From: Mizuhopecten yessoensis
Taxonomy: Eukaryota
DNA length: 64,000 nucleotides
NCBI RefSeq assembly: GCF_002113885.1
Contig: NW_018407978.1
Location: 216,693 to 280,692, forward strand
Direction of reading: 5' to 3'
The notes beneath the pieces were generated by a model, which saw nothing but the letters and a program-made list of their open reading frames with translations, searched no databases and was not told the DNA's origin. Of the stretch, positions 994 to 59,011 are shown in pieces (the first letter of the stretch is position 1; each line of letters opens with the position of its first letter). The translations under genes and the position numbers were made by a program.

Positions 994-3450
994 TTAGTTC
1001 ATTCTATCCAGTTGAAGAATTCTGCGTGCTCTTAATTGATTAAAAAATGGAATTTCTCTGATATACAGGTGTTTACATTGTTCTTTTGTTACGATAAATG
1101 GTGTATTCCACTTACTTCCTTCAAATAAAATAACGGACTGACCACCGTCCAAGGAAAGTTTACAAAAGTCATCATACTTAGTTCTAGTGCTTCTGAAGTA
1201 AGCTAGTTCTTCATAGAAATCGGGTGGTTGGTGTTTTAGTTTTTCTTTAAGTTTGTCCAGGAAAAAATTGTAAAGGGCGTAATCGAGATGTGCCCATTTT
1301 CTATATAGTCCTTCTTCTTCTGAGCCGATTTCCAATCGCGGATCCTTTTTCTTTTTGGAATTTAGTTTACCGTATAAAACGTATTGCAGATCCCAGTTTA
1401 AGAGTCGTCGCATCAGCACAATGGATTCGTCGAAATATTCTGTGACAATCACCAAGTCGATCTCATTATCCAGTTTCGCTAAAAAGCGCTGAATTTTGTC
1501 ATGGTCTTTTGACCAAAACAAGTCTTGAGGAAACCCAAAATCATACGCCATTTTATTGTACGTGGAAGGAATGTTGTTTCCTCCAAACTTCATGTATTTA
1601 TCATTGTGCAACAGATATTCCTGCACGGGTTTGTCTCCTGGTATGTTTAACACAAATCGTTGACGATAATACTGCAAATTAGATTGGAACTGATGGAACG
1701 GCTCCCTCACGATTCCTATATATTTAGTATCGTTCGGTAGTATTCGACCAAATGCTTCCCTGTCAAATCTAACGTGAGAACACAATATATCATAAGGTCT
1801 GCTTGGGGGCGGTGGAAGAATACTGCCAGGCCTCACGGTATTTGCCGTGCTAATGGTGGAACCAGCTCTTGGCAAAGCAAATACGAGGTCATTTTCATAT
1901 CCATAGCGTAGGAATATATTCTGAACCGTGGTACTAGCAGCCTTATGAGCCTTTATGAATGCTATGTGATGGACCGGTTTGCCATTTGAGTCCTTGATTG
2001 GGTCGACATTCGGTTCAGGAATAGGTTGGACTTGCTCTTCCAAATCATAGAGCGTCTGTTTTGAGAGGTTGTTCTGTAGTAAGGAATGTTGTTCCGGAAT
2101 TTTGTAAACTTGTTGATATTGAAGTGGTAATGGTTCACCATAAAAATCAGAGTTTAATGTTGACACGAATTTCCGAACAGGGGTATGTATTAAAGTTACG
2201 ACAGTATCAAAGTATCTTCCGATACTGACTAAAATCATCGTCGCCAAGCAACTAAGTCCAAACATCATCCTGTAAAAACAACAAGGCACCTATACTGTTA
2301 TATTTCCAACTAGTGATTGTCTCACTTTGGAGGTCTGGTACAAATAATATGCAATACATCTAAAACACGTATAAGCTTCCATTCTACACACAATCTCTTT
2401 GCAAATGATATACTTCAAATATAGCAGCGGGAACGTTAGGTACAGGTCGGATCGTATTTTTTATTTTCAAATTTTAGATACTATTTTTTAAGTTTTAGAT
2501 ATTTAATGATAGATTATGGGCCTTTGAGGTACGGTTTCATAAGCTATAATTATCACAGTATTAACAAATGCTTTTGAACACCATACAAGCACAGTCTATT
2601 TCAAAAGAAATGAATGCTAACTGTAAACACAAGCAAAGCGACATTACAGAAGAGACAATACATCTCTACGCATATTCATAATCAACGTATGACGTAGTTA
2701 GTGCAATATTTCACCCGGACTGACCTTAAATCATGGACTCTTGGTCAACATCGCACCATGCAATATTTCACCCGGACTGAGCTTTAATCACGGACTCTTG
2801 GTCAACATCGCACCGTAGATATTAATGTTATCATATATTTACTCTGTAAAGTAACTTGTACAGACTACAGACAATGTTAATTAATGATAATCGCTACTTA
2901 CCACAAAAGTTTCTTATTTTGCATAGTTGTTTCAAACTTACACTCCAGCGAATAGTGGCAACCTTAACTCACGTGTCACGTGACGGAATCAATGTACCAC
3001 GTGTTCCAATTGATATTCTGTTACCGGTAAATTGGCTGTACGTCGAACCAGCTGTTTCTATAAACTGCATATTATAGGCGATTAATATAGATGATATATT
3101 CGACAAAGTGTATATCTAAAATAAGCCGATTACGACACTAAGAATATGATCTGCATACCAATACTAGATTCTTGATTTTTTTATTGGACAGATATTATGA
3201 AATAATGTACAAATATACGTCCCTAGATACCTGTTTGGTTTCTGAAAATGATTAATGGCGCCTTAAGTATTCTCATAAATTCAACAGTGTTCTGTATAAA
3301 AACATTTTTTGTGATATCATTATATAAAATACAACCTTTACCGGAGGGATATCATATCGACTTATGTGATAAGTAAATTTTTGAATAGGTACTTATTTAC
3401 CAGATGTTGACTCTGCTTGTGAACTTTGACCTCAAAGTAGTCCATGACAT
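994..3450 (-). CDS. Galactose-3-O-sulfotransferase family (GAL3ST/cerebroside sulfotransferase-like), type II Golgi membrane protein, ~441 aa; coding exons 3450-3401 and 2269-994
   Basis: Contains the 5'-PAPS-binding motif FIKAHKAASTTVQNIFLRYG, the 3'-PB motif GIVREPFHQFQS, and DLVIVTEYFDESIVLMRRLLNW, all typical of Gal-3-O-sulfotransferases. Exon 1 (ATG at 3450, MSWTTLRSKFTSRVNI-TG|gtaaat) joins in phase to tttttacag|G at 2269, giving W followed by the TM segment MMFGLSCLATMILVSIG. Confidence 0.9.
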
Positions 3451-6191: not shown

Positions 6192-9100
6192 AATAATACA
6201 CTCCTAGATAATACATTGATACATATGACAATACACTCCTAGATAATACACCGATACATATGACTATACACTCCTAAATAATACATCGATACACAATACA
6301 CTCCTAAATAATACATCGATACATATGACAATACACTCCTAGATAATGCATCGATACACAATACACTCCAAGATAATAAACCGATACACATAACAATACA
6401 CTCCTATATAATACATCGATACATATGACAATACACTCCTATATAATACATCGATACATATGACGATACACTCCTAGATAATACACCGATACATATGAAA
6501 CATATGACAATACACTCCTAGATAATACACCGATACACAACAGGCTCCTAGATAATACAACGATACATATGACAATACACTCCTATATAATACAGCGATA
6601 CATATGACAATACACTCCTAAATAATACACCGATACATATGACAATACACTCCTAAATAATACACCGATACATATGACAATACACTCCTAGATAATACAT
6701 CGATACATATGACAATACCCTCCTAGATAATACACCGATACATATGACAATACCCTCCTAGATAATACACCGATACACAACACGCTCCTAGATAATACAT
6801 CGATACATATGACAATATGACAATACACTCCTAGATAATACACCGATACACAACATGCTCCTAGATAATACAACGATACATATGACAATACACTTCCATA
6901 TGACAATACACTCCTAGATAATACACCGATACACAACAGGCTCCTAGATAATACAACGATACATATGACAATACACCCCTAGAAAATACATCGATACATA
7001 TGACAATACACACCTAGATAATACACCGATACATATAACAATACACTTCTAGATAATACACCGATACATATGACAATACTCTTCTATATAATACACCGAT
7101 ACATATGACAATACACTCCTAGATAATACATCGATACATATGACAATACCCTCCTAGATAATACCCCGATACATATGACAATACCCTCCTAGATAATACA
7201 CCGATACACAACACGCTCCTAGATAATACATCGATACATATGACAATACCCTCCTAGATAATACACCGATACATATGACAATACCCTCCTATATAATACA
7301 TCGATACATATGACAATACACTCCAAGATAACACATCGATACACAACACGCTCCTAGATAATACATCGATACATATGACAATATGACAATACACTCCTAG
7401 ATAATACACCGATGCATATAACAATACACTTCTAGATAATACACCGATACATATGACAATACACTCCTAGATAATACCCCGATACATATGACAATACCCT
7501 CCTAGATAATACCCCGATACACAACACGCTCCTAGATAATACAACGGTACATATGACAATACACTCCTAGAAAATACACCGATACATGTAACAATACACT
7601 CCAAGATAAGGCACAGATACATATGACAAACCGCTCCTGTGTTATACGCTGATGCATAAGACAATACACTTCTATATTATACATCGATACATACAATACA
7701 CTCCTAGATAATACACCGATACATATGAAACATATGACAATACACTCCTAGATAATACACCGATACACAACATGCTCCTAGATAATACAACGATACATAT
7801 GACAATACACTCCTAGAAAATACACCGATACATATAACAATACACTCCAAGATAAGGCACAGATACATATGACAAAACACTCCTGTGTTATACGCTGATG
7901 CATAAGACAATACACTTCTATATTATACATCGATACACACAATACACTCCTAGATAATACACCGATACATATGACAATACACTCCTAGTAAAAACACCGA
8001 TACATATGACAATACATTCCTAGATAATACATCGATACACAACACACTCCTAGATGATACATTGATACATATGACAATACACTCCTAAATAATACATCTA
8101 CACTCCTAAATAATACACCGATACATATGACAATACACTCCTAAATAATACACCGATACACACAATACACTACTAGATGATAAACCAATACATATGACAA
8201 TACACTCCTATATAATTTATCGACACATTATCAATACACTCCTAGATAATACACCGATACATATGAAAACACACTCCCAGATAGTACACCGATACAAACA
8301 ATACACTCCTAGATAATGCACCGATACATATGACAATACACTCCTAGATTATACACCGATACATATGACAATACACTTCTAGATAATACACCGATACACA
8401 CAATACACTCCTAGATAATACATCGATACATATGACAATACATTCCTAGATAATACATCGATACACATCACGCTCCTAGATAATACATCGATACAAAAGA
8501 CAATACACTCCTAGATAAGGCACCGATATATATGACAATACACTCCTGTGTTATACGCTGATGCATAAGACAATACACTTCTATATAATACATCGATACA
8601 CAAAATAAACTCCTAGATAATACACCGATACATATGACAATACACTCCTAGATAATACACCGATACATATGACAATACACTCCTAGATAATACACCGATA
8701 AATATGACAATTCACTTCTAGATAATACACCGATACACACAATACACTCCTAGATAATACACCGATACCTATAACAATACACTCCTAGATAAGGCACCGA
8801 TACATATGACTATACACTCATATATAATACACCGATACATATGACAATTCACTTCTAGATAATACACCGATACACACAATACACTCCTAGATAATAAACC
8901 GATACATATGACTATACACTCCTAGTTTAAAAACACAATACATATGACAATACACTCCAGGATAATACACCGATACATATGACTAAACACTCCTAAATAA
9001 TACATCGATACACAATACACTCCTAGATAATACATCTATACAAAACACGCTCCTAGATAATACAACGATACATATGACAATACACTTCTATATAATACAT

Positions 9101-12100
9101 CGATACATATGACAATACACTCCTAAATAATACATCGATACATATGACAATACACTCCTAGATAATACACCGATACATATGACAATACACTTCTATATAA
9201 TACACCGATACATATGACAATACACTCCTAGATAATACACCGATACATATGACAATACACTCCTAGATAATACATCGATACATATGACAATACACTTCTA
9301 TATAATACACCGATACATATGACAATACACTCCTAGATAATAAACCGATACATATGACAATACACTCCTAGATAATACATCGATACATGTGACAATACAC
9401 TCCTAGATAATACACCGATACACAACACGCTCCTAGATAATCCATCGATACATATGACAATACACTTCTATATAATACACTGATACACAACACGCTCCTA
9501 GATAATACATCGATACATAGGACAATACACTCCTAGATAATACACCGATACACAATACAGTCCAAGATAATACATCGATACACATAACAATACACTCCTA
9601 AATAATACATTGATACATATGACAATACACTCCTAGATAATACACCGATACACAATACACTCCAAGATAATACATCGATACACATAACAATACACTCCTA
9701 AATAATACATCGATACATATGACAATACACTCCAAGATAATACATCGATACATATGACAATACACTCTAAGATAATACATCGATACATATGACAATACAC
9801 TCCTAGATCATACATCGATACATATGACAATACACTCCTAGATCATACATCGATACATATGACAATACACTCCTAGATAATACATCGATACATATGACAA
9901 TACCCTCCTAGATAATACACCGATACACAACACGCTCCTAGATAATACTTCGATACATATGACAATACACCCCAAGATAATACATCGATACACATAACAA
10001 TACACTCCTAAATAATACATCGATACATATTACAATACACTCCAAGATAATACATCGATACACATAACAATACACTCCTAAATAATACATCGATACATAT
10101 TACAATACACTCCAAGATAATACATCGATACACAACACGCTCCTAGATAATACATCGATACATATGACAATACCCTCCAAGATAATACATCGATACACAA
10201 TACACTCCTAGATAATACACCGATACACAACAATACATATGACAATACACTCCTAGATAATACACCGATAAATATGACACTTCACTTCTAGATAATACAC
10301 CGATACACACAATACACTCCTAGATAATACACCGATACACAACAATACATATGACAATACACTCCTAGATAATACACCGATACACAACACGCTCCTAGAT
10401 AATCCATCGATACGTATGACAATACCCTCCAAGATAATACATCGATACACAATACACTCCTAGATAATACACCGATACACAACAATACATATGACAATAC
10501 ACTCCTAGATAATACACCGATAAATATGACAATACACTTCTAGATAATACACCGATACACAACACGCTCCTAGATAATACACCGATACATATGACAATAC
10601 ACTTCTATATAATACACTGATACACAACACGCTCCTAGATAATACATCGATACATATGTCAATACACTCCAAGATAATACATCGATACATATGGCAATAC
10701 ACTTCTATATAATACACCGATACATATGACAATACACCCCTAAATAATACATCGATACATATGACAATACATACACCGATACATATGACAATACACTCCT
10801 AAATAATACATCTATACATATGACAATACACTCCAAGATAATACATAGATACATATGACAATACACTCCTAGATAATACATCGATACACAATACACTCCT
10901 AGATAATACACCGATACACAACACGCTCCTATATAATACATCGATACATATGACAATACACTCCAAGATAATACATCGATACACAACACGCTCCTAGATA
11001 ATACATCGATACATAAATACACTCCTAGATAATACATCGATACATACGACAATACACTCCTAGATACTACATCGATACACAATACACTCCTAGATAATCC
11101 ACCGATACACAACACGCTCCTATATAATCCATCGATACATATGACAATACACTCCTAATTAATACACACTCCTAGATTATACACCGAATACATATGACAA
11201 TACACTCCTAGATAATCCATCGATACACAATACACTCCAAGATAATACATCGATACACAATACACTCCTAGATAATCCACCGATACATATGACAATACAC
11301 TCCTAAATAATACACCGATACATATGACAATACCCTCCTAGATAATACATCGATACATATGAAAATACACTCCTAGATAATACATCGATACAGATGACAA
11401 TACACTCCTAGATAATACATCCATACATATGACAATACACTCCTAGATAAGACACCGATACATATGACAATACACTCCTATATGATATATCGACACATTA
11501 TCGATACACTCCTAGATAATACACCGATACATATGAAAATACACTCCTAGATAATACACCGATACATATCACAATACACTCCTAGACAAGGCACCGATAC
11601 ATATGACAATACACTCCTATATGATATATCGACACATTATCGATACACTCCTAGATAATACACCGATACACAATACACTCCAAGATAATACATCGATACA
11701 CAATACACTCCTAGATAATCCACCGATACATATGACAATACACTCCTATATGATATATCGACACATTATCGATACACTCCTAGATAATACACCGATACAC
11801 AATACACTCCAAGATAATACATCGATACACAATACACTCCTAAATAATACATCGATACACAATACACTCCTAGATAATAAACCGATACACAACACGCTCC
11901 TATATAATACATCGATACATATGACAATACGCTCCTAGATAATACATCGATACATAAATACACTCCTAGATAATACATCGATACAGATGACAATACACTC
12001 CTAGATAATACATCCATACATATGACAATACACTCCTAGATAAGACACCGATACATATGACAATACACTCCTATATGATATATCGACACATTATCGATAC

Positions 12101-13278
12101 ACTCCTAGATAATACACCGATACATAGATAATACATCGATACATATGACAATACTCTCCTAGATAATACATCGATACACAATACACTCCTAGATAATCCA
12201 CCGATACATATGACAATACACTCCAAGATAATACCCCGATACACAACACGCTCCTATATAATCCATCGATACATATGACAATACACTCCTAATTAATACA
12301 CACCCGATACACAACACGCTCCTATATAATACACCGATACATATGACAATACACTTCTATATAATACCCCGATACACAACACGCTCCTATATAATACTAT
12401 GACAATACACTCCTAAATAATACATCGATACACAATACACTCCTAGATAATAAACCGATACATATGACTATACACTCCTAAATAATACATCGATACATAT
12501 GACAATACACTCCTAGATAATACACCGATACCTATAACAATACACTTCTAGATAATACACCGATACACAACACGCTCCTAGATAATACATCGATACATAT
12601 GACAATACACTTCTAGATAATACACCGATACACAATACACTCCTAGATAATACACCGATACATATAACAATACACTCCTAGATAAGGCACCGATACATAT
12701 GACAATACACTCCTGTGTTATATGCTGATACATAAGACAATACACCTCTATATTATACATCGATACACACAATACACTCCTAGATGATACACCGATACAT
12801 ATGACTATACACTCCTAAATAATACATCGATACATGTGACAATACACTCCTAGATAAGGCACCGATACATATGACAATACACTCCTATATGATATATCGA
12901 CACATTATCGATACACTCCTAGATAATACACCGATACATATGAAAACACACTCCCAGATAGTACACCGATACAAACAATACACTCCTAGATAATGCACCG
13001 ATACATATGACAATACACTCCTAATTAATACACACTCCTAGATTATACACCGATACATATGACAATACACTTCTAGATAATACACCGATACACATAATAC
13101 ACTCCTAGATAATACACCGATACATATGACAACACACTCCTAGATAATACATCGATACACATAACAATACACTCCTAGATAATACACCGATACATATGAC
13201 AATACACTCCAAGATAATACATCGATACACATAACAATACACTCCTAGATAATACATCGATACACAACACGCTCCTAG
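6192..13278. repeat. 7.1-kb satellite of interspersed 35-bp and 30-bp monomers (~200 units)
   Basis: 35-mer AATACACTCCTAGATAATACACCGATACATATGAC and 30-mer AA(T/C)AC(A/G)CTCCTAGATAATACA(C/T)CGATACAC; the plus strand is G-poor. Confidence 0.97.
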
Positions 13279-14196: not shown

Positions 14197-17100
14197 ATGG
14201 ATATTGGATGGGTGGTACGGAAAGCTGAGCAAATTTTTAACCGCTTTTGGGGCAGAAATATGGAGAAATCAGTTTGGGAGAATCTACCGGATGTGGCTAT
14301 GATAGAAGTATTCAAACTACTGAGGGACCCGGACAAGGCCAACCTCGCACTCACATGTACAAACTGGGCACGCCTCTTTTACACGCCAAGCTTGTGGCGT
14401 AACAGACATTTCGACATGGGCGGGTACAAGTGTCACACGAATGGCGTACGCGCAAACAAGTTCGCGGATCAGTTGGGTGCGTACGTGGAATACCTGTCAA
14501 TCACATGTAGTCATCCTTCTTACCATATTACGAAAGCGTTCCAGGAAAGTATGGAAGACCTCCTTGTCAAATTCAGGGGGAGTCAACTCAAAGAATTTGA
14601 GATGGAGCGCCTTGAACTGGACCGGTTCTGGAAGCACGATTCAGCAAGAGATAAATTCATGAACAGCTTCGTTAAATTCTTCAAAACACAGAAGCGTTTG
14701 AAGGTGTTTGATATGACTGCAGCCCAATGTGTTCTTACCGGGGGATTGAAAATTATTGAAGCGGTTGGTCAAAAGTCAGGTAAAACTCTGGAAGAAATCT
14801 ACATAGAAGACTTTTTCCCTGCGCGATTTACAGTGTACAGTGTCGAAAGGTTCCAAATGGCATTGTCTTTTTTTACCAATCTCAGTTACATTGCTGTTAA
14901 TTACCACTGTATATCAGAAGAAATAATTGAAATGTTTTCAAAAACATTAGCAGGAAAATTAAAATTTTTCAATATTAAGGTGTATAGGAATAATCCTCAC
15001 CTTCACAGAATATCACCGTTTGCCTGGAAACAGTTGACGACCGTTTGTCCGAAGCTGCAGGTCATGTTCTGGTTCGATAGCGTGGCTAAATCTACAGAGA
15101 TTATCCCAATACTGGTACCAGAGATCCCCGTACAGGACGTACACATCTGGACAGGGTACGAAGACGATGTGGACTGGAACCTCAGCCACACAATAACCCA
15201 CATCGCGAACAGCTATGCCGCAACGCTAGGTAAGCTATTTATAGATACAACGCTATTTGCAGATTTACGCGACATCGCGCAAGTAACGTTTTCAAACTTC
15301 GCGGACAGCTTCTCATACGCAAGTTAGTACACGCGTCTAATTTTGTTCCGTCCCCGCAGTCAGGTAAGTATACTCCGCAACGCCAGAAAGCAACGTTCGC
15401 GTCAAAAAGTCCCCGCAGCACTAGATATAATACTCAGTAACGCGAACATAAGCGCTGAATAACCTCTTTTTCTGAGACTTGTGATTTATACAGGCCTGTT
15501 AGTCCTTTTTTTATAACTGAATACCCATTTTTTTTAAATTAATCATCCTCGATATCCAGGGGTTACGCTCTCTTTCGCTCTCTACACCCCTGGAATATGT
15601 CATAGCAAAATTGAAGGCACGAAGATAGCTGTTTGATTGGTCTCAAAATAAACCTGACCAATCGCTAGGATGCCTGTCCTTTGAAGGTTACAAAGGAGAG
15701 ACGCCCGACTTCAAAGCCTGTCAACTTTTACCGTTACGTGACCGCGAGATTCTTTTGATGTATATCAAAGGATTGAACTAGAGTCCTTGTCTCATCAACA
15801 AGGTGGCACACACCGAGCCTTCAATTTTACTATGACATATTCCAAGGGTGTAGAGAGCGAAAGAGAGCGTAACCCCTAGATATCGAGGATGATTAATGAA
15901 CCAATGTACAAATAGAGCTGTAACAAATTATCAGACCCCTGTGTTTTTTTCCATTTAAGTAGCATTGTCGTCTTCTTTCATAAATAAGGAGCCAGTATGT
16001 CACCATCGATGGTAAAAGCACTAAGTTGAGACATATTTGCAAAGAAATGTAAGTTAAGAGAAATTCTTTCCAGCACATGTAAATTTGATCACAACTAATT
16101 TAAATAAGCATATTTTATCACAAATCGTAACCGCTTATAATGGTTCTTTGCCATGACCTAACCCGAGTTTCCTCTGGCCCTACCACCAGACTTAGACATT
16201 TTGACATAAAGATGTTTCCCACACCAGACATCTACAATGTGTATGTCAAAATGTCTCAGTCTGGTGTTAGGGCCAGAGGAAACTCGGGCTATGCCTTGTC
16301 CAAGTCCAGTAAAACAGTTTTCAATTTTGTTCTGATTTTAAGCATTTATGCCTCTACAACGATGCTTACATTTCGATTACACAGTCTTTAAATTAAAAAT
16401 AAACCTACTTAATGTAGCGGACCTAGACTGGGCAAATCGCCGGCAACCATGTAGAGCGTCCGTCTAGAGTTCGGAGGGTCCCGGGTTCGAATCCTGGTCT
16501 TGCCGTGCATTCCTCTTGTTACATTTTCACAAAACATAACAAATGGAATTATTACATGTTAAAGTTTTCCGGAGTTATTCAAAAACCGATTAGGAGTAAT
16601 AGGAAGGGGAGGGGGGGCGATCATTTCGGTTTCCTGTCTGTTTTACATTTGTCGCCTAGCGAAATGGTAATTGTATAAAAAATGTCTGTTTCACCAATTG
16701 ATCAAACGGTCTAAATCACAGTGACTTGTCACATATCAATGGGCTACCGTAATGCAAACTTATATGTGACGTCTTTGTGGTTTAAACAAAAAGAACCTTC
16801 CCAGAATGATAGCAGATAGAGTTTTCTTTGTTCAAAGACTATGATAATATGAAACTAATTTGATTGCAAAAATTACCTAATTTGCATTTTAACTTTAACA
16901 GTACCTACCTAGTCCAGAGAGATTTGCGCAAGTACCAAACCGCTAGATACCAGTACAAGATTCTTTTTTATCTAACGTCATGTTTTAAACAAAGCAGATA
17001 CTATAATTAACGATATTTTAACCTATCACAAGGAACATTTTTGTTTGAACATCGCCACAAAAATTACGTAAAAAAGAAGATGTGTGTTTTCCATGAAGTC

Positions 17101-52855: not shown

Positions 52856-54966
52856 AAAACCGTTTTGGTGTCACTGAGGGAAAAGTATTTCAAATAATGG
52901 AGCAGAAACTATCAGCCAATCAGATGTATGATTGAAGGGATCAATTTTGATTGCTTTGACCTACGATAGAATGACCCTAAATAGTTTATAATTGTAGGTG
53001 TATAGTATATATCCCTTACAAATAAATCAAACCTCTTGCAGTGGTTACAAACATGTACTGTGAAGATTTGGAGTGGAAACTGTAAGCCAACTAAGATGTG
53101 ACATTAAACACTGATGGTACGACTCCAAAAAGTACAACATGCTAGGTGTACAAATATAGATGAACCGAGTCATGGCATGGATACTAAGTAATCAGACAGG
53201 ATGATTTGACATTGAATGATCTTGACCTGAAAGATATACTGATACTTGATGGTTGGATGGACAGTACAACGTGACGGTATTGTTTGATCTATTTTAAAAT
53301 CAAATGCAGCAGTAACAGTAAAAGATTAATAACAAATCTAGATTACATCATTCAATCTTTTATTGATGGAATAATATAAACTTTTACAATGTACATTGTA
53401 TATTCCAACAGAATACAATTTACTGTAACTAAAACACATGCAAACAAGAAATAATAGGCAAAAACCATTAATCCTTGAAATAATCAATGCAATCACAAGA
53501 TGATCTTATTATAAAATTATATCCTGAATCAGCTATGTACATGTGTTTGGTAGTAAGCTGTTACAAGTGTACTCTCAAAGGTAGACATGAGTATAAATAA
53601 TAGAACATTGATTTATTTCAGGTTCATTCATTTGAACAGGTTTGCATGATCACACCTATCACTTCTGCACAATGCCTCTTAAAGGTTATTTAGAAGAAAA
53701 GTAAACACATTTGGAAGGACAACGAACACTACTCCATAACATGAACTCCTCAGGCTATTTGTGCAGGATGAGCTAAAAATAGTTAACAGCAGTTTCAAAT
53801 AGACCATTATTATAGTCATAGGTGTATACATGTACATGTATATACAGTTAATACTGCTGCTTATTGAAATTATTACAAATTGTCAAACCTGAATTAGTTT
53901 GGAAGTGTCTATCGATATCATAGAACTGAAAATTGTTACTTGTTCATGTTCTAATATAACAGACTTGTACAAAGTTAGCCCAAGTTTCCTCTGGCCCGTC
54001 ACCAGACTAAGACATCTTAACAGGTAGATGTCTGGTGTGGGCACACATAAATCTTTCTGTCAAAATGTCTAAGATTGAAGAATGGTGTCAGGGCCAGAGG
54101 AAACTCTGGCTAGAAACAAAGTTTTCTCTGTTTAATTTGAACTGGGTATGATAAAGATGTGTTGCATCAAGAAGAGTTTCAAATTGAGATAAAAATCATA
54201 TCTTGTTCATGGGTACATCTTGATCCAGATCTATGTAGTGTTACAAACCTATGCAACAAAACTGTTTTTCAGTATAATTTCTTTCCCAAAGAGATTAAAA
54301 ACAACATATAACAGTATAGAAGTTCAAACTTAATTGTTGATCATCTTACACACATGCATGCATACATTATGTACCTGAGTATATTTCACCATACCCTGAT
54401 CAGTTTATAACAATTCAAACAGCATAAAATCAATTGTGTTTAAAAGATACACAAACGAGATATCTACACAAAGAAGCATAAAATTCCTTCTTTTTATCAC
54501 AAGTTTTTAAAGTTTCATCATGATACAATTTTTTCTTGATCCCCATGTCAGAATAACAGCCACTTTTTCCTCTAGTTTGGAATTTCATCCTTACTTTAAA
54601 TTCACACATCTTATTCTTAAACATCAACTGTATATTCATTGTAGCCAAATGTGACCTTTTAATTTGTATCAAAATTGTACAACATTTTTAGCAATTTGGG
54701 ATGAGTTTTATGGACTGATTTTGATTGGTGCCCTCATATTATCAGATGTCATTTTACTATAAAGTCTATCTCATGATCACCTGTGCCTATATATACAAGG
54801 CATCACAGCTCTGAAGAATACATGTATATACTTACAAAAGTACAGATTTGTTATCATAGTCTACATGTACCTGTCAGTGTACTGGCCGCCTTTGATTCTG
54901 CTGATGGGCATCCTATATATCACAGGTACAATGTATCTATACATTGTGTATAGCAAGGCAATCCAC

Positions 54967-56607
54967 TCACGCATCACTTTCATCACTCTCATCCGTATCT
55001 CTCTCCTCTTCCTCCTCTTCGAGCTCCTCTTCCTCTGATTCACCCTCTTCACTGTCCTCCCCAAAGAAGTATGGGTAGTCATCACTGGATATATACCCGT
55101 ATACTTCTTCCTCCTCGCCAAACTCTTCTCCCAACTCCTGCCACTTCATGTCCCAGTTCCCTATAAAGTCTGGGTTTTCGATGTCCCTGTGACATACCCA
55201 GTTAACATTGAAACAGATGATACCTTCATTCTCCCAACATTCTCTCTCCGCACCTGAAAAACTGTGTAAATAACCACTAAAATTAGCAGGAGGTTCTAAC
55301 GTAACGTCTGGGGGTTCTGTACTCCCAAATGGTCCAAGTCTCCTTCCAAGATTGGTGACAAATTCTAAACAATTTATCATCATATATTGAGTCCTTAATT
55401 TAACTTGTACGATCACCTCTCCCTTTTCTAATTCTACCTCACAAACATCAGTCACTTCTGACGAGTCCTTAGGAAGGCCATGGTGATGCCAGAAGCTATC
55501 AAACACCTCCATACCCACAATCACATTTTCTTTCTGACTCTCATTAAAACGTGCTACAATGACAATCTTGGAAATCTGTGACCGTTCATTTGATGTCTCG
55601 CAGGTTCCATCATTGAAGTATCCTTTAGAAAAGTTACTGCAATCAGATTTACCACTGTATTTCTTGCTGTCAGGAATGATCTTGGTGTTATCCTGGTCTC
55701 GTCTTACCACCCAGTGAAGCGGAGGAGATCTGCAGTTTTTTATAGACATCAACAGAGCCTTATTAGTGACATCTTTATGATCCAGGAGGTATTTCCTAAC
55801 AGTATCGAGCTTCTCCTCCAAGAGAATATCTGAGTTATTCTCTAAATGTTTTTCCCAATCACAGTAATCAATGTAGATCAGTCGGGCTGCTACAACCAGA
55901 GAGTAGATTTGTTCTCCATTCAGTTTTGTCTCCTCGTTCTGCCCGGAAATGTAACAAATTGCTGCCTCAAGTATGGCCAATTCATTAAGGTCATTGGGAA
56001 GGGGGTAGCCGCCACGAAACACGATCAAATTATCTTTACTCAACAACTCAAGAACACAGTCATAGGGAATGGCCGAGAACTCCTCCATCCGGCTAGCTTC
56101 TTCCAGATGCCGACCAATCAGTTTTATACATCTGTTTTTGATCTTTTCTAAATAGAATTTGGCAGCAAATGATAGCATGGAAACACAGTTACTTCTGTCA
56201 ACACTTTTGAGTAACAATCTCTGACATGACTCCTTTACAAACTCGACCTGAAGATAGTCAGCCACAATGAACAGACTCTGTACATTGTTACCAGTGACCT
56301 CGACTGACCCTGTGTAGGCAAACTGGAGCAAAAGTTCCAGACTGGAAAAGTCTACATCATGTAGTACCACGTCAGATTTGTTCTTGGCGTCCATGTGAAG
56401 GAGGACCTTGAAGTACTCGGAGAGGGATGCTAGCACATTCTTGTGAGCTTTGACACTCTTCTCACCAACATGGAGAGTGATATCACAGAACTCCTCCTCT
56501 CGCCAAGACTTGTGTAGGGCCTTCAGCACAGCTCGGGGATACCCCGGGCTGGACACCAATTTGGAAACAGTTGAATCCAAGCCAGAATCGAATGATTTTG
56601 CTTCCAT
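54967..56607 (-). CDS. BTB-BACK protein with C-terminal jacalin-like (beta-prism) domain and acidic tail, 546 aa, single coding exon
   Basis: BTB: FCDITLHVGEKSVKAHKNVLASLSEYF...LLQFAYTG...ADYLQV. BACK: SNCVSMLSFA...EEFSAIPYDCVLELLSKDNL...AAICYI. Jacalin-like: ELEKGEVIVQV...INCLEFVTNLGRRLGPFG...YLHSFSG. E/D-rich tail. Acceptor tctttttag at 56639-56640, upstream of the ATG. Confidence 0.9.
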   Translation of the reverse strand: MEAKSFDSGLDSTVSKLVSSPGYPRAVLKALHKSWREEEFCDITLHVGEKSVKAHKNVLASLSEYFKVLLHMDAKNKSDVVLHDVDFSSLELLLQFAYTGSVEVTGNNVQSLFIVADYLQVEFVKESCQRLLLKSVDRSNCVSMLSFAAKFYLEKIKNRCIKLIGRHLEEASRMEEFSAIPYDCVLELLSKDNLIVFRGGYPLPNDLNELAILEAAICYISGQNEETKLNGEQIYSLVVAARLIYIDYCDWEKHLENNSDILLEEKLDTVRKYLLDHKDVTNKALLMSIKNCRSPPLHWVVRRDQDNTKIIPDSKKYSGKSDCSNFSKGYFNDGTCETSNERSQISKIVIVARFNESQKENVIVGMEVFDSFWHHHGLPKDSSEVTDVCEVELEKGEVIVQVKLRTQYMMINCLEFVTNLGRRLGPFGSTEPPDVTLEPPANFSGYLHSFSGAERECWENEGIICFNVNWVCHRDIENPDFIGNWDMKWQELGEEFGEEEEVYGYISSDDYPYFFGEDSEEGESEEEELEEEEEERDTDESDESDA

Positions 56608-57542
56608 TTCTGATCATTAAGACGGGTATCTTGTTCAGCTAAAAAGAAACAAAATAAGATCTGCAATAAATTAATGTCACCAATATATCGTTAGTACAAT
56701 GTTTATCATTAACCTTAACTAATTACAACATTCTTTGAATAATCCTACAAACTTACATGTCTTTAATTTATGTGTTATAAATAACAAATGGCTTCTTTTT
56801 CAAATTAAACTTGGTCCTATAATTTTGCATAGTTGTAAGGAATAAATGAAAATGATGGGCCCATTTTATGCTGCAACTGCATACTTGTAGCGGAACTGGA
56901 CTGGCATAAACTTGACAACTTTTTGAAATTTTCATGGGGGAGATTCTGCATTTTGAAAATTAAAACATAAATCAAATGTGTGTATGTACCCCCTAGAGAG
57001 GAAATAACCCTTGAAAATGACATATTTTGAGTTGTTCTTTCGAATGAAATCAGGAGATCTTAGAATACAGAAATAGTTTAGCAAATTCATTGGTTGAAAA
57101 TACTAAATTTAAGGGTCCAAAACGGGAGTATCCCTCCTAATAGGGAGAGTTGGCAAGTACAAGTACTAGTATATATATGCAATTGATATTAGTACAGTGT
57201 AATTTCTTAAATTAATTACATTCATTCAATTACTTGTACTACTGTATCTATAAGGATTAAAGGAAAGCTGAAAACCCTGATAATGGCTGATATTCAATCT
57301 TAATAAAAAAAAAATCTGTAAAATCACAGCTAGGAATCTGAAATTTTACGGGTATAGCGGTACCAGGGATGACACGTATACTTTGTAAGTTTCTGGTAAT
57401 TATAAAACAACATAAAACTTTGATCATACAAAAATCGCTGTTAATAATTGCTCCAAAGCGATCTCCCTAAAACTATGTACGTGCACCGACTTGCATTGTA
57501 TTTTTATTTACATCTAATTCCGTGCTACATGATGCATATATT

Positions 57543-59011
57543 TGTAACGGAACTGGATTGGATCAATCATTCCGATGGTCCGGGGTTCAAACCCCAGCCT
57601 GGCCGTGCATTTTCCCTCTCCTGTTACAGTGGTGCCAGCTCACTCAGGTCACAGTGACCAACTCTTGTTTCAAGCATTCTGTGTACTGTAACAAGGGGAT
57701 AACCGAACCCGGGTTGTAAATACATGAAGTTGTGTATTCTGGGGGCGAAGACCAAGAAAAAGGAGGTAGGAATGTAGCGGAACTGGACTGGCATAAACTT
57801 GCCAATTTTTTGAAATTTCCATGGGGGAGATCAAAGGTGTTTGAAATTCTGACTGTACTTGAGATACATGCATGTATATATCATATAAAAAAAACATATA
57901 CAAATAATGGTATTACTACTTTTTTTATACAATTTTTTTTAATGATATATATCTCAATTTACAGTCAGTAGAAGTCCCCGTCCATCATCTCCTACAACAG
58001 ACTAGCAGTGGGACTAGGAGTTCCCAAGCCAACAACATCAGGCAAATAAGCACCAGAGTCAACGCATATAAACATTTATTCGTCCCTGCTATAATCAAGA
58101 TGTGGAACTCAATACCATCAGATATCAGAGGACTACCAACAGTAGACAGTTTCCGGCACCACATACAGACCATTGATGTGGCCGGACTCAACTCATCCCC
58201 AGGCACTAGACAGGACTCCGGACTTGTACATTGTAAATACCAGATTTTAGATGTACATACAGACAGATGTAAATAGCAAATTGTTTAGCTGTATGGCCAA
58301 TAAGCGCCGGAGAGCCTGGAGTAGTGACACTCATCTGATGAGTCAACTCCATAACGGGAAGAAGAAGAAGAAGAGTATTTCAAACACCTTTGGCTTTGGG
58401 TAGATTCTGCATGCTCAAAATTAAAATATAAATAAAATGTGTGGGATACCCCCTAGAGACCAAATTAAACTTTAAAATGGCATATTTTGAGTTTTTCTTA
58501 GTATGCAATCAATAGATCTTAGAATATAGGAACAAGGAAGCGTATATGTTGTTTTTATCATATAAAAACCGAACCTAATGAATTCACTGGTTGAAAACAC
58601 TCAATTTAAGGGTTCAAAATCGGGAATTCGAATCTCCCTCCTAAATAGGGAGGGTTAACGTTGGCAAGTATGGACTGGGTCGATCGTCACCGACCAGGGT
58701 CGTTTTCGTTTAAACGTGTCAGACCGGTCGGACCGCTGTTGTTCGTTTATTAAATAAAGTTGGACCTAGTATTCCGATGCTGCTTTCAGGCGAGCCATGG
58801 CAAAGCATTGCAAGGCCTGCATAAACATGTGCAGGTCCGCCAGGATTTATACCCGAAATTGTTACATTTATAAACGGCCAAACCGGTTGTTCCGCAAAAA
58901 TGACCAGGCCCCTGATAGCCCAATCGAATTGGTAGAGCGTCCGTCTATAGTTGGGAGGGTCCCGGGTTCGAACCCCCGGCCCTGGCCGTGTATTTTTCCT
59001 CGCCTGTTACA
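57543..59011 (+). mobile_element. tRNA-LTR TRIM whose second LTR is interrupted by nested DNA elements and a LINE 3' end
   Basis: LTR1 57543-57628, PBS GTGGTGCC, PPT AAGAAAAAGGAGGTAGGAA. LTR2 starts at 57773 and finishes ...GGGTTCGAACCC...CCTGTTACA at 59011. Confidence 0.7.
57990..58375 (+). mobile_element. LINE 3' end fragment
   Basis: Reads RQISTRVNAYKHLFVPAIIKMWNSIP (LINE C-terminal Y..SF.P..I..WN.LP motif) and ends in a (GAA)n tail at ~58358-58373. Confidence 0.7.

Follow-up and report, generated by a model that had tools for sequence, protein, structure and literature searches.

A scallop BTB-BACK protein with a predicted jacalin-like beta-prism in the place of the Kelch propeller, and its relatives in three phyla

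The longest open reading frame (ORF) of the 64-kb window analyzed here, a stretch of contig NW_018407978.1 of the scallop Mizuhopecten yessoensis, encodes a protein that joins a BTB-BACK region to a C-terminal domain which our models identify as beta-prism I, the jacalin fold, in the position of a Kelch propeller. The gene is transcribed, and proteins with the same layout form a family that, as judged from alignments, is conserved across three phyla and is undescribed as far as could be found. We consider it fairly probable that the scallop protein is an expressed BTB-BACK scaffold with a beta-prism I and an acidic tail that serves, by homology, as a CUL3 adaptor. Such a scaffold would be cytosolic and probably dimeric; its BTB domain and 3-box would bind CUL3 and dimerize, as in other substrate adaptors of CUL3-RING ligases, and the beta-prism would select the target. 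In most family members a griffithsin-like Asp/Gly site makes a sugar ligand plausible. In the scallop-specific sub-clade to which the protein belongs this signature is lost, and the prism there most likely binds a protein or another non-canonical ligand.

Pfam-A matches, scored against the curated cut-offs (gathering scores), together with profile searches, homologue alignments and structure models, divide the protein as follows.

56206..56514, minus strand: BTB/POZ domain, residues 32-134 (PF00651, 93.1 bits against a cut-off of 20.5)
55738..56187, minus strand: BACK domain, residues 141-290 (PF07707, 30.9 bits for residues 141-196 against a cut-off of 20.9)
within 55738..56187, minus strand: 3-box, residues 141-166, defined as the first two BACK helices (PMC3597819)
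55189..55686, minus strand: jacalin-like beta-prism I, residues 308-473, 12 strands (Pfam, profile and models)
55120..55188, minus strand: post-prism segment with a short helix, residues 474-496, conserved within the scallop sub-clade described below
54970..55119, minus strand: disordered acidic tail, residues 497-546 (predicted local distance difference test score, pLDDT, below 50)

The Jacalin match (PF01419) covers residues 372-452 and scores 27.1 bits with the whole protein and 28.8 bits with the C-terminal piece (cut-off 22). No Kelch family of Pfam matched the 546-aa protein even at E<=10, and there was no Pfam match to an F-box or FBA domain. A first-pass annotation, made from the sequence alone, had proposed a BTB-BACK region followed by a jacalin-like C terminus and lacking Kelch repeats. 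Indeed, all three domains score above their cut-offs, the five motifs quoted for the C terminus are all present in the translation, and Kelch repeats are absent. The annotation named no strand; the frame lies on the minus strand. The acidic tail, announced as about 45 residues long, has 50, with 54% Asp or Glu and a single basic residue, so the length had been closely estimated. The N terminus contains nothing resembling a signal peptide (the maximal Kyte-Doolittle mean over 12 residues is 0.57). A secreted lectin was ruled out by this lack of a hydrophobic stretch and by the BTB domain at the start of the protein, which together argue for a cytosolic or nuclear location.

The identity of the C-terminal domain was examined by profile search, modeling and structural comparison. 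A profile of five C-terminal domains matched Parkia lectin (E = 1.8e-11), griffithsin (about 1e-6) and ZG16p (2e-3) in the PDB. AlphaFold2 models gave domain pLDDT values of 80-95 overall. A model of residues 312-505 reached 80-91 in its core, and its best Foldseek matches were all beta-prism I proteins: griffithsin, ZG16, ZG16b, WGA16 and banana lectin (E about 1e-5). Alignment with VIA-align yielded Z 15.3 for WGA16 and Z 14.7 for ZG16p, the latter with a root-mean-square deviation (rmsd) of 2.0 Å over 113 residues and 26% identity; for the two lectins the rmsd spans 2.0-2.4 Å. The full-length model, built on an alignment of 32 family members, had a mean pLDDT of 81.7 and a predicted template-modeling score (pTM) of 0.77. 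It comprises a BTB domain at residues 16-135 (pLDDT above 90), an all-helical BACK domain at 141-289, 12 strands at 308-473, a short helix, and disorder from residue 497. The 12 strands form the three four-stranded Greek keys that characterize beta-prism I. AlphaFold2, Foldseek and VIA thus agree on the beta-prism I that had been expected, in a check set beforehand, at residues of about 310-475. We conclude that, as modeled, the C-terminal domain is a beta-prism I occupying the place of the Kelch propeller.

The fold is common to ZG16p, ZG16b, WGA16, griffithsin and pearl-oyster PPL3 (Z 12.7-15.3, rmsd 2.0-2.9 Å over 108-117 residues, 18-26% identity), and griffithsin and the family domain both carry an F-x-T-N-x-G-R-x-x-G-P-F/Y-G block. 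The known lectins are small, mostly secreted, single-domain proteins, whereas here the prism is the C-terminal module of a 546-aa BTB protein that is probably cytosolic.

Downstream of the prism, the post-prism segment shows the pattern C-H-R-D...D-P...W..L in the homologue alignment, and its helix is modeled at about residues 481-491. Acidic tails follow the prism in 14 of the 32 family members, in both major clades, and are often rich in Tyr or Phe. By this comparison the tail is a recurrent feature of the family; it could act in autoinhibition, as a pseudo-ligand, in solubility, or in the binding of basic partners. Tails rich in Asp, Glu and Tyr (for example, with D-D-Y-D-D-E-Y-Y runs) were seen in cnidarian, krill and scallop members, such as P0037, P0063, P0080 and P0183.

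The structure of the gene was read from the genome together with an RNA contig and raw reads.

54967..56607, minus strand: coding sequence, 546 codons plus stop, uninterrupted from ATG to stop and contained in one exon; Met1 is shared by all aligned homologues
54541..56638, minus strand: transcribed exon with the end of the 5' untranslated region (UTR), the whole coding sequence and the 3' UTR (RNA contig and raw reads)
54541..54966, minus strand: 3' UTR of about 426 nt (extent of RNA contig and reads)
56639..56660, minus strand: 3' splice acceptor, a polypyrimidine tract with AG at 56640-56639 (from the sequence)

The RNA contig of run X1 (2140 nt) runs colinear with 54541-56638, ungapped and differing at two places, and carries 42 extra letters past 56638 that have no genome match there. 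At the acceptor the minus strand reads ...cttattttgtttctttttag and then, across the boundary, ctgaac; that is, a polypyrimidine tract followed by AG. Because the contig leaves the genome exactly at this acceptor, the coding exon is preceded by a spliced non-coding exon. The coding region is therefore a single exon with a spliced non-coding exon upstream, the position of which was not located. In raw RNA-seq run X21, with depth taken from about a fifth of the run, reads were found in bins 54537-56637 only, at a depth of 1-3, and flanking bins were at zero; the RNA libraries look unstranded. Two other raw RNA-seq runs were almost empty over the gene. Fourteen small assemblies from five studies contain 82-88% of the sampled words of the stretch. 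Expression of the gene is real, low and sample-dependent. A chance ORF or a pseudogene was ruled out by homologue conservation, model confidence and RNA evidence: a frame of this length in DNA of 36-38% GC, homologues of 543-558 aa that align end to end, and the RNA coverage exclude a frame arisen by chance.

In the 5' UTR of the coding exon, an out-of-frame upstream ATG is found at 56615-56617 (minus strand), 10 nt upstream of the main start codon. With T at -3 it stands in a weak context, unlike the main ATG (A at -3, G at +4), and it could be a small upstream ORF or a leaky-scanning element. The gene is flanked by stretches (54083-54112, 56910-57210, 57797-57831 and 58739-58900) whose RNA and contig depth is far above that of the gene, reaching thousands at most (X1). 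Loose ends and strand-switch joints are numerous in them, and joints also link one stretch to another, a pattern that dispersed repeats or transposable elements would give if fragments of them were transcribed from many copies.

To see how far the architecture extends, an exhaustive profile search with the C-terminal domain was run against 1.84 billion representatives (threshold E<=1e-3). It returned 383 matches, and among the best 150 of the 383, about 38 clusters at 50% identity have an N-terminal BTB-BACK region. Pfam found BTB, BACK and Jacalin in 14 of 14 proteins tested, the scallop protein included. Members come from Mollusca (Pecten, Argopecten, Mizuhopecten, Mytilus edulis, Lymnaea stagnalis, Bulinus truncatus), Cnidaria (Actinia, Actinostola, Stylophora, Xenia, Hydractinia, Sanderia) and Crustacea (the krill Meganyctiphanes norvegica). 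Examples are Pecten maximus XP_033760208, Actinia tenebrosa XP_031567854, Stylophora pistillata XP_022801939, Hydractinia XP_057311666, Mytilus edulis CAG2195185 and Meganyctiphanes CAL4240634. The named relatives have the same three domains in the same order as the scallop protein and can be aligned with it over the full length. The rarity of the architecture implied by the first-pass annotation is not borne out by this spread, and the survey across invertebrates that it called for turns up scallops, Mytilus, snails, six cnidarians and krill. Searches of a word index found one relative with the C-terminal region alone and, with the 32-sequence family alignment, nothing beyond the scallop relatives; they added little, so the spread of the family rests on the exhaustive profile search. 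One cluster, P0063, a coral-like member that is sister to Stylophora in the tree described below, stands for 312 near-identical sequences from ENA/Logan assemblies, which indicates that the family is well sampled in environmental and holobiont data, yet unannotated.

The closest relatives are from scallops. Argopecten irradians P0002 ('actin-binding protein IPP-like', 544 aa) is 58% identical, and Pecten maximus P0003 ('kelch-like protein 28 isoform X2', 339 aa), the closest named relative, is 73% identical. Two proteins from transcript contigs are 50% and 44% identical, and a more distant Mizuhopecten yessoensis paralogue 31%. The relatives of 543-558 aa align end to end with 44-58% identity, and many blocks are conserved specifically in the sub-clade. 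The P0003 isoform stops where the beta-prism begins, so that the lineage may also yield products consisting of BTB-BACK alone. In a quick maximum-likelihood tree, with support from the Shimodaira-Hasegawa-like approximate likelihood ratio test (SH-aLRT) only and rooted on two BTB-Kelch proteins, the scallop protein falls in a sub-clade with P0002, P0004 and P0005, with Argopecten P0194 as sister (support 99-100). This sub-clade is nested in a mollusc-rich clade of 18 members (support 95), apart from a clade that is mainly cnidarian. In scallops the family has at least three paralogous lineages. When four family members were used in tblastn searches of the window, this gene alone was matched.

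Public names of family members are automatic and misleading ('kelch-like protein 8/12/25/28', 'actin-binding protein IPP-like', 'KLHL1_4_5'). No published description of a BTB-jacalin fusion was found in a limited literature collection, which is absence of evidence only. One paper in which the words BTB and jacalin occur together (PMC8878817) was rejected, as 'BTBP' there is a typographical error for beta-prism/beta-trefoil lectins. As far as could be found, then, BTB-BACK adaptors with exchangeable recognition modules are known, and a lectin-fold module in the place of Kelch is apparently undescribed.

The N-terminal half of the scallop protein is nearest to proteins solved with CUL3, namely KBTBD2 (E = 3e-24), vaccinia A55, KLHL3 and KLHL11. 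PDB matches to CUL3 adaptors range from E 3e-24 to 1e-14 over residues of about 20-197, with the KBTBD2 alignment extending through residue 197, into BACK. The order of BTB, 3-box and helical BACK is that of the KLHL/KBTBD adaptors, the 3-box/BACK region is intact by Pfam and in the model, and the N-terminal strand and helix of BTB dimers are present in the model. In contrast to these adaptors, the scallop protein has a beta-prism I instead of a Kelch propeller, and it departs from them at the CUL3-contact motif. In KLHL3 this phi-x-E motif is M83-S84-E85, in the alpha3-beta4 loop, and the E85A substitution severely disrupts Cul3 binding (PMC3616122). The corresponding position of the scallop gene is:

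56386..56394, minus strand: M72-D73-A74, at the position of the phi-x-E CUL3-contact motif (HMMER aligns it with L-S-E of KBTBD2)

The hydrophobic residue, M72, is kept here and is invariant in close relatives, but the Glu is absent; an ungapped reading of the region gives A-K-N, also without Glu. Krill and several coral-type members keep M-Q-E, W-E-E, W-K-E or W-V-E, and the whole mollusc-rich clade has a short [M/V/H]-D-type loop. Since this loop is shared by a large clade and its phi residue is invariant, it may be a working variant of the CUL3 interface; it may equally mean weak CUL3 binding. The absence of the Glu makes CUL3 binding of the scallop protein uncertain, and we regard an adaptor role for it as plausible, with the arguments for and against about evenly matched. 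The CUL3 adaptor of the first-pass annotation thus stands as regards the BTB domain, the 3-box/BACK region and the likeness to KBTBD2, and falters at the missing Glu. CUL3 binding across the family, and target selection by the prism, are likewise suggested by homology.

A BTB-BACK region fused to a beta-rich, non-propeller C-terminal module has a parallel in Btbd6, whose architecture is given as BTB-BACK-PHR in bioRxiv 10.1101/575910. The PHR domain is a beta-sandwich and the scallop module a beta-prism I, the two being compared by fold type.

Several observations weigh against an expressed CUL3 adaptor with a beta-prism for target selection. The Glu equivalent to E85 of KLHL3 is replaced (M-D-A). 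The alpha3-beta4 loop, moreover, has two residues fewer than that of KBTBD2 or of the cnidarian and krill members, which leaves the alignment there ambiguous. Expression is low, and clear in one of three raw RNA runs, and the likeness in fold alone establishes no ligand. An Ala occurring naturally where KLHL3 has E85, together with a shortened loop, is also what would be expected of a BTB scaffold or regulator independent of CUL3, a homodimer or a heterodimer with canonical paralogues that binds CUL3 poorly and either sequesters ligands or acts as a natural dominant-negative. The presence of at least three paralogous lineages in scallops is consistent with such a role, and so are the 339-aa P0003 isoform, with the BTB-BACK-only products that may exist, and the proposal (PMC3616122) that Cul3-binding-deficient KLHL3 mutants form BTB heterodimers with the wild type. 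However, M72 and an intact 3-box/BACK region are conserved, the short loop common to the 18-member clade suggests a functional variant rather than decay, and the heterodimers are hypothetical. We therefore consider a CUL3-independent role possible but rather unlikely, and retain the CUL3 adaptor as the preferred reading.

The likely ligand of the prism was judged from its sugar-site motifs. Griffithsin contacts O5 and O6 of mannose through hydrogen bonds from Asp30, Asp70 and Asp112, and binds the sugar less tightly when these are replaced by Ala (PMC5086628). The Mizuhopecten paralogue aligns 'SG-W-M-M-D...G-P-W-G-G-P-G-G-G' with griffithsin '...SG-D-Y-I-D...F-E-T-N-M-G-R-R-F-G-P-Y-G-G-S-G-G-S', and the Asp of the aligned griffithsin block is Asp70. 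Scallop paralogues of the Mizuhopecten/Pecten P0006/P0018 type retain both SG-W-M-M-D and GG-x-GG. In a motif table of 32 non-redundant family members, this position is occupied by Asp in 23, by Asn in 7 and by Ser or His in the remaining 2. Four residues earlier, Gly is missing only from the scallop sub-clade and one further member, and most members retain the GG-x-GG loop. At the sugar-contact place of the third Greek key, Asp is absent from every family member examined. In the scallop protein the two elements appear as:

55372..55386, minus strand: Y408-M-M-I-N412, degenerate counterpart of G-W-M-I-D of the family and G-D-Y-I-D70 of griffithsin
55312..55326, minus strand: G428-S-T-E-P432, degenerate counterpart of the GG-x-GG loop

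SG-W-M-I-D, the one copy of the G-x3-D motif that the family conserves, has become Q-Y-M-M-I-N, with Y408 in place of Gly and N412 in place of Asp; the first-pass annotation had picked out the right loop (RTQYMMINCL) when it described an altered G-x3-D site. The Gly-rich loop reads G-P-F-G-S-T-E-P-P, compared with G-P-Y-G-G-x-G-G in the family and griffithsin. The protein differs in the same Asp/Gly positions and GG loop from known jacalin-related lectins. Within the scallop sub-clade the Asp position varies (N/S/N/H), while other blocks there are well conserved; such variation would be expected once the site had been released from constraint. Most relatives keep SG-W-M-I-D and GG-x-GG, and several a canonical M/W-x-E, whereas the scallop sub-clade keeps none of these. 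An upstream 'HGG' loop, considered as a third lost element of the sugar site, was rejected, as it is mostly just [HY]-G in the 32-member alignment. The loss of the signature in the sub-clade makes a non-canonical ligand likelier for the prism of the scallop protein, the simplest such ligand being a protein.

Sugar-recognizing receptors of cullin-RING ligases are known in FBXO2/6/27, F-box proteins of CUL1-based Skp1-cullin-F-box (SCF) ligases that combine an F-box with an FBA domain. The likeness of the scallop protein to them is conceptual only, that of a cullin-RING receptor with a carbohydrate-binding fold, and involves no homology; moreover, its own sugar site looks lost. The first-pass annotation had envisaged a CUL3-RING ligase (CRL3) analogue of SCF-FBXO2/6/27, in which the jacalin domain binds exposed glycans of damaged organelles, cytosolic glycoproteins or microbes and directs their ubiquitylation. 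The fold is that of mannose/glucose lectins, most members keep griffithsin-type SG-x-x-x-D and GG-x-GG, and, there being no signal peptide, glycans would be met only where they are exposed to the cytosol. Asn, found at the Asp position in 7 of the 32 members, might still hydrogen-bond sugar. Yet in the scallop protein Tyr408, Asn412 and G-S-T-E-P stand at the sugar site, the positions concerned vary within the sub-clade, Asp-to-Ala changes at the equivalent griffithsin sites weaken mannose binding (PMC5086628), and the CUL3-contact Glu is missing. Glycan sensing is thus a reasonable proposal for the canonical family members, but with the Asp, the Gly and the GG-x-GG loop all replaced it is unlikely for the scallop copy, and so is the glycan-directed adaptor as a whole. 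Tentatively, and as a possibility we do not favor, the family may consist of unrecognized glycan-sensing CUL3-RING receptors with a griffithsin-like mannose/glucose site, an invertebrate counterpart of SCF-FBXO2/6/27; the scallop sub-clade would then be a neofunctionalized offshoot in which sugar binding, and perhaps also tight binding to CUL3, was exchanged for a new protein ligand or a regulatory, dominant-negative role. Finally, that the gene is a decaying or non-functional lineage-specific duplicate under relaxed selection over its whole length is highly improbable: two functional signatures are lost together and expression is low and patchy, but the 546-codon frame is intact and alignable over its full length with relatives of 543-558 aa, with sub-clade-specific conserved blocks, the full-length model is confident (pLDDT 81.7), and a discrete spliced transcript is present in assemblies of five studies.

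Elsewhere in the window, a minisatellite of roughly 7 kb (6195-13264; 35-bp unit, about 200 copies, 75% matches) shows extreme strand asymmetry, with a GC skew of about -0.5 and an AT skew of +0.28. A single-exon ORF of 431 aa at 994-2289 (minus strand) has a strong Pfam match to galactose-3-O-sulfotransferase (PF06990, E = 1.6e-54). In an ORF of 376 aa at 14197-15327 (plus strand), the sole Pfam domain is an F-box at the N terminus (PF12937/PF00646), which makes it a second gene of cullin-RING substrate-receptor type in the window.

CUL3 ligases pick their targets via a module attached to BTB-BACK, among the known ones being Kelch, MATH and PHR. A conserved module with a lectin fold, shared by cnidarians, molluscs and krill, would give CRL3 ligases a new way of recognizing targets. 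In practical terms, public annotation gives genes of this family the wrong names, 'kelch-like' or 'actin-binding IPP-like'. The scallop gene is less canonical, with both the sugar signature and the CUL3-contact residue changed, which makes it a natural comparison partner for learning the role of each motif. For the canonical members, if the proposal is true, the family would offer a testable route to cytosolic glycan sensing, of substrates of endoplasmic-reticulum-associated degradation, ruptured vesicles or intracellular microbes, in animals dependent on innate immunity.

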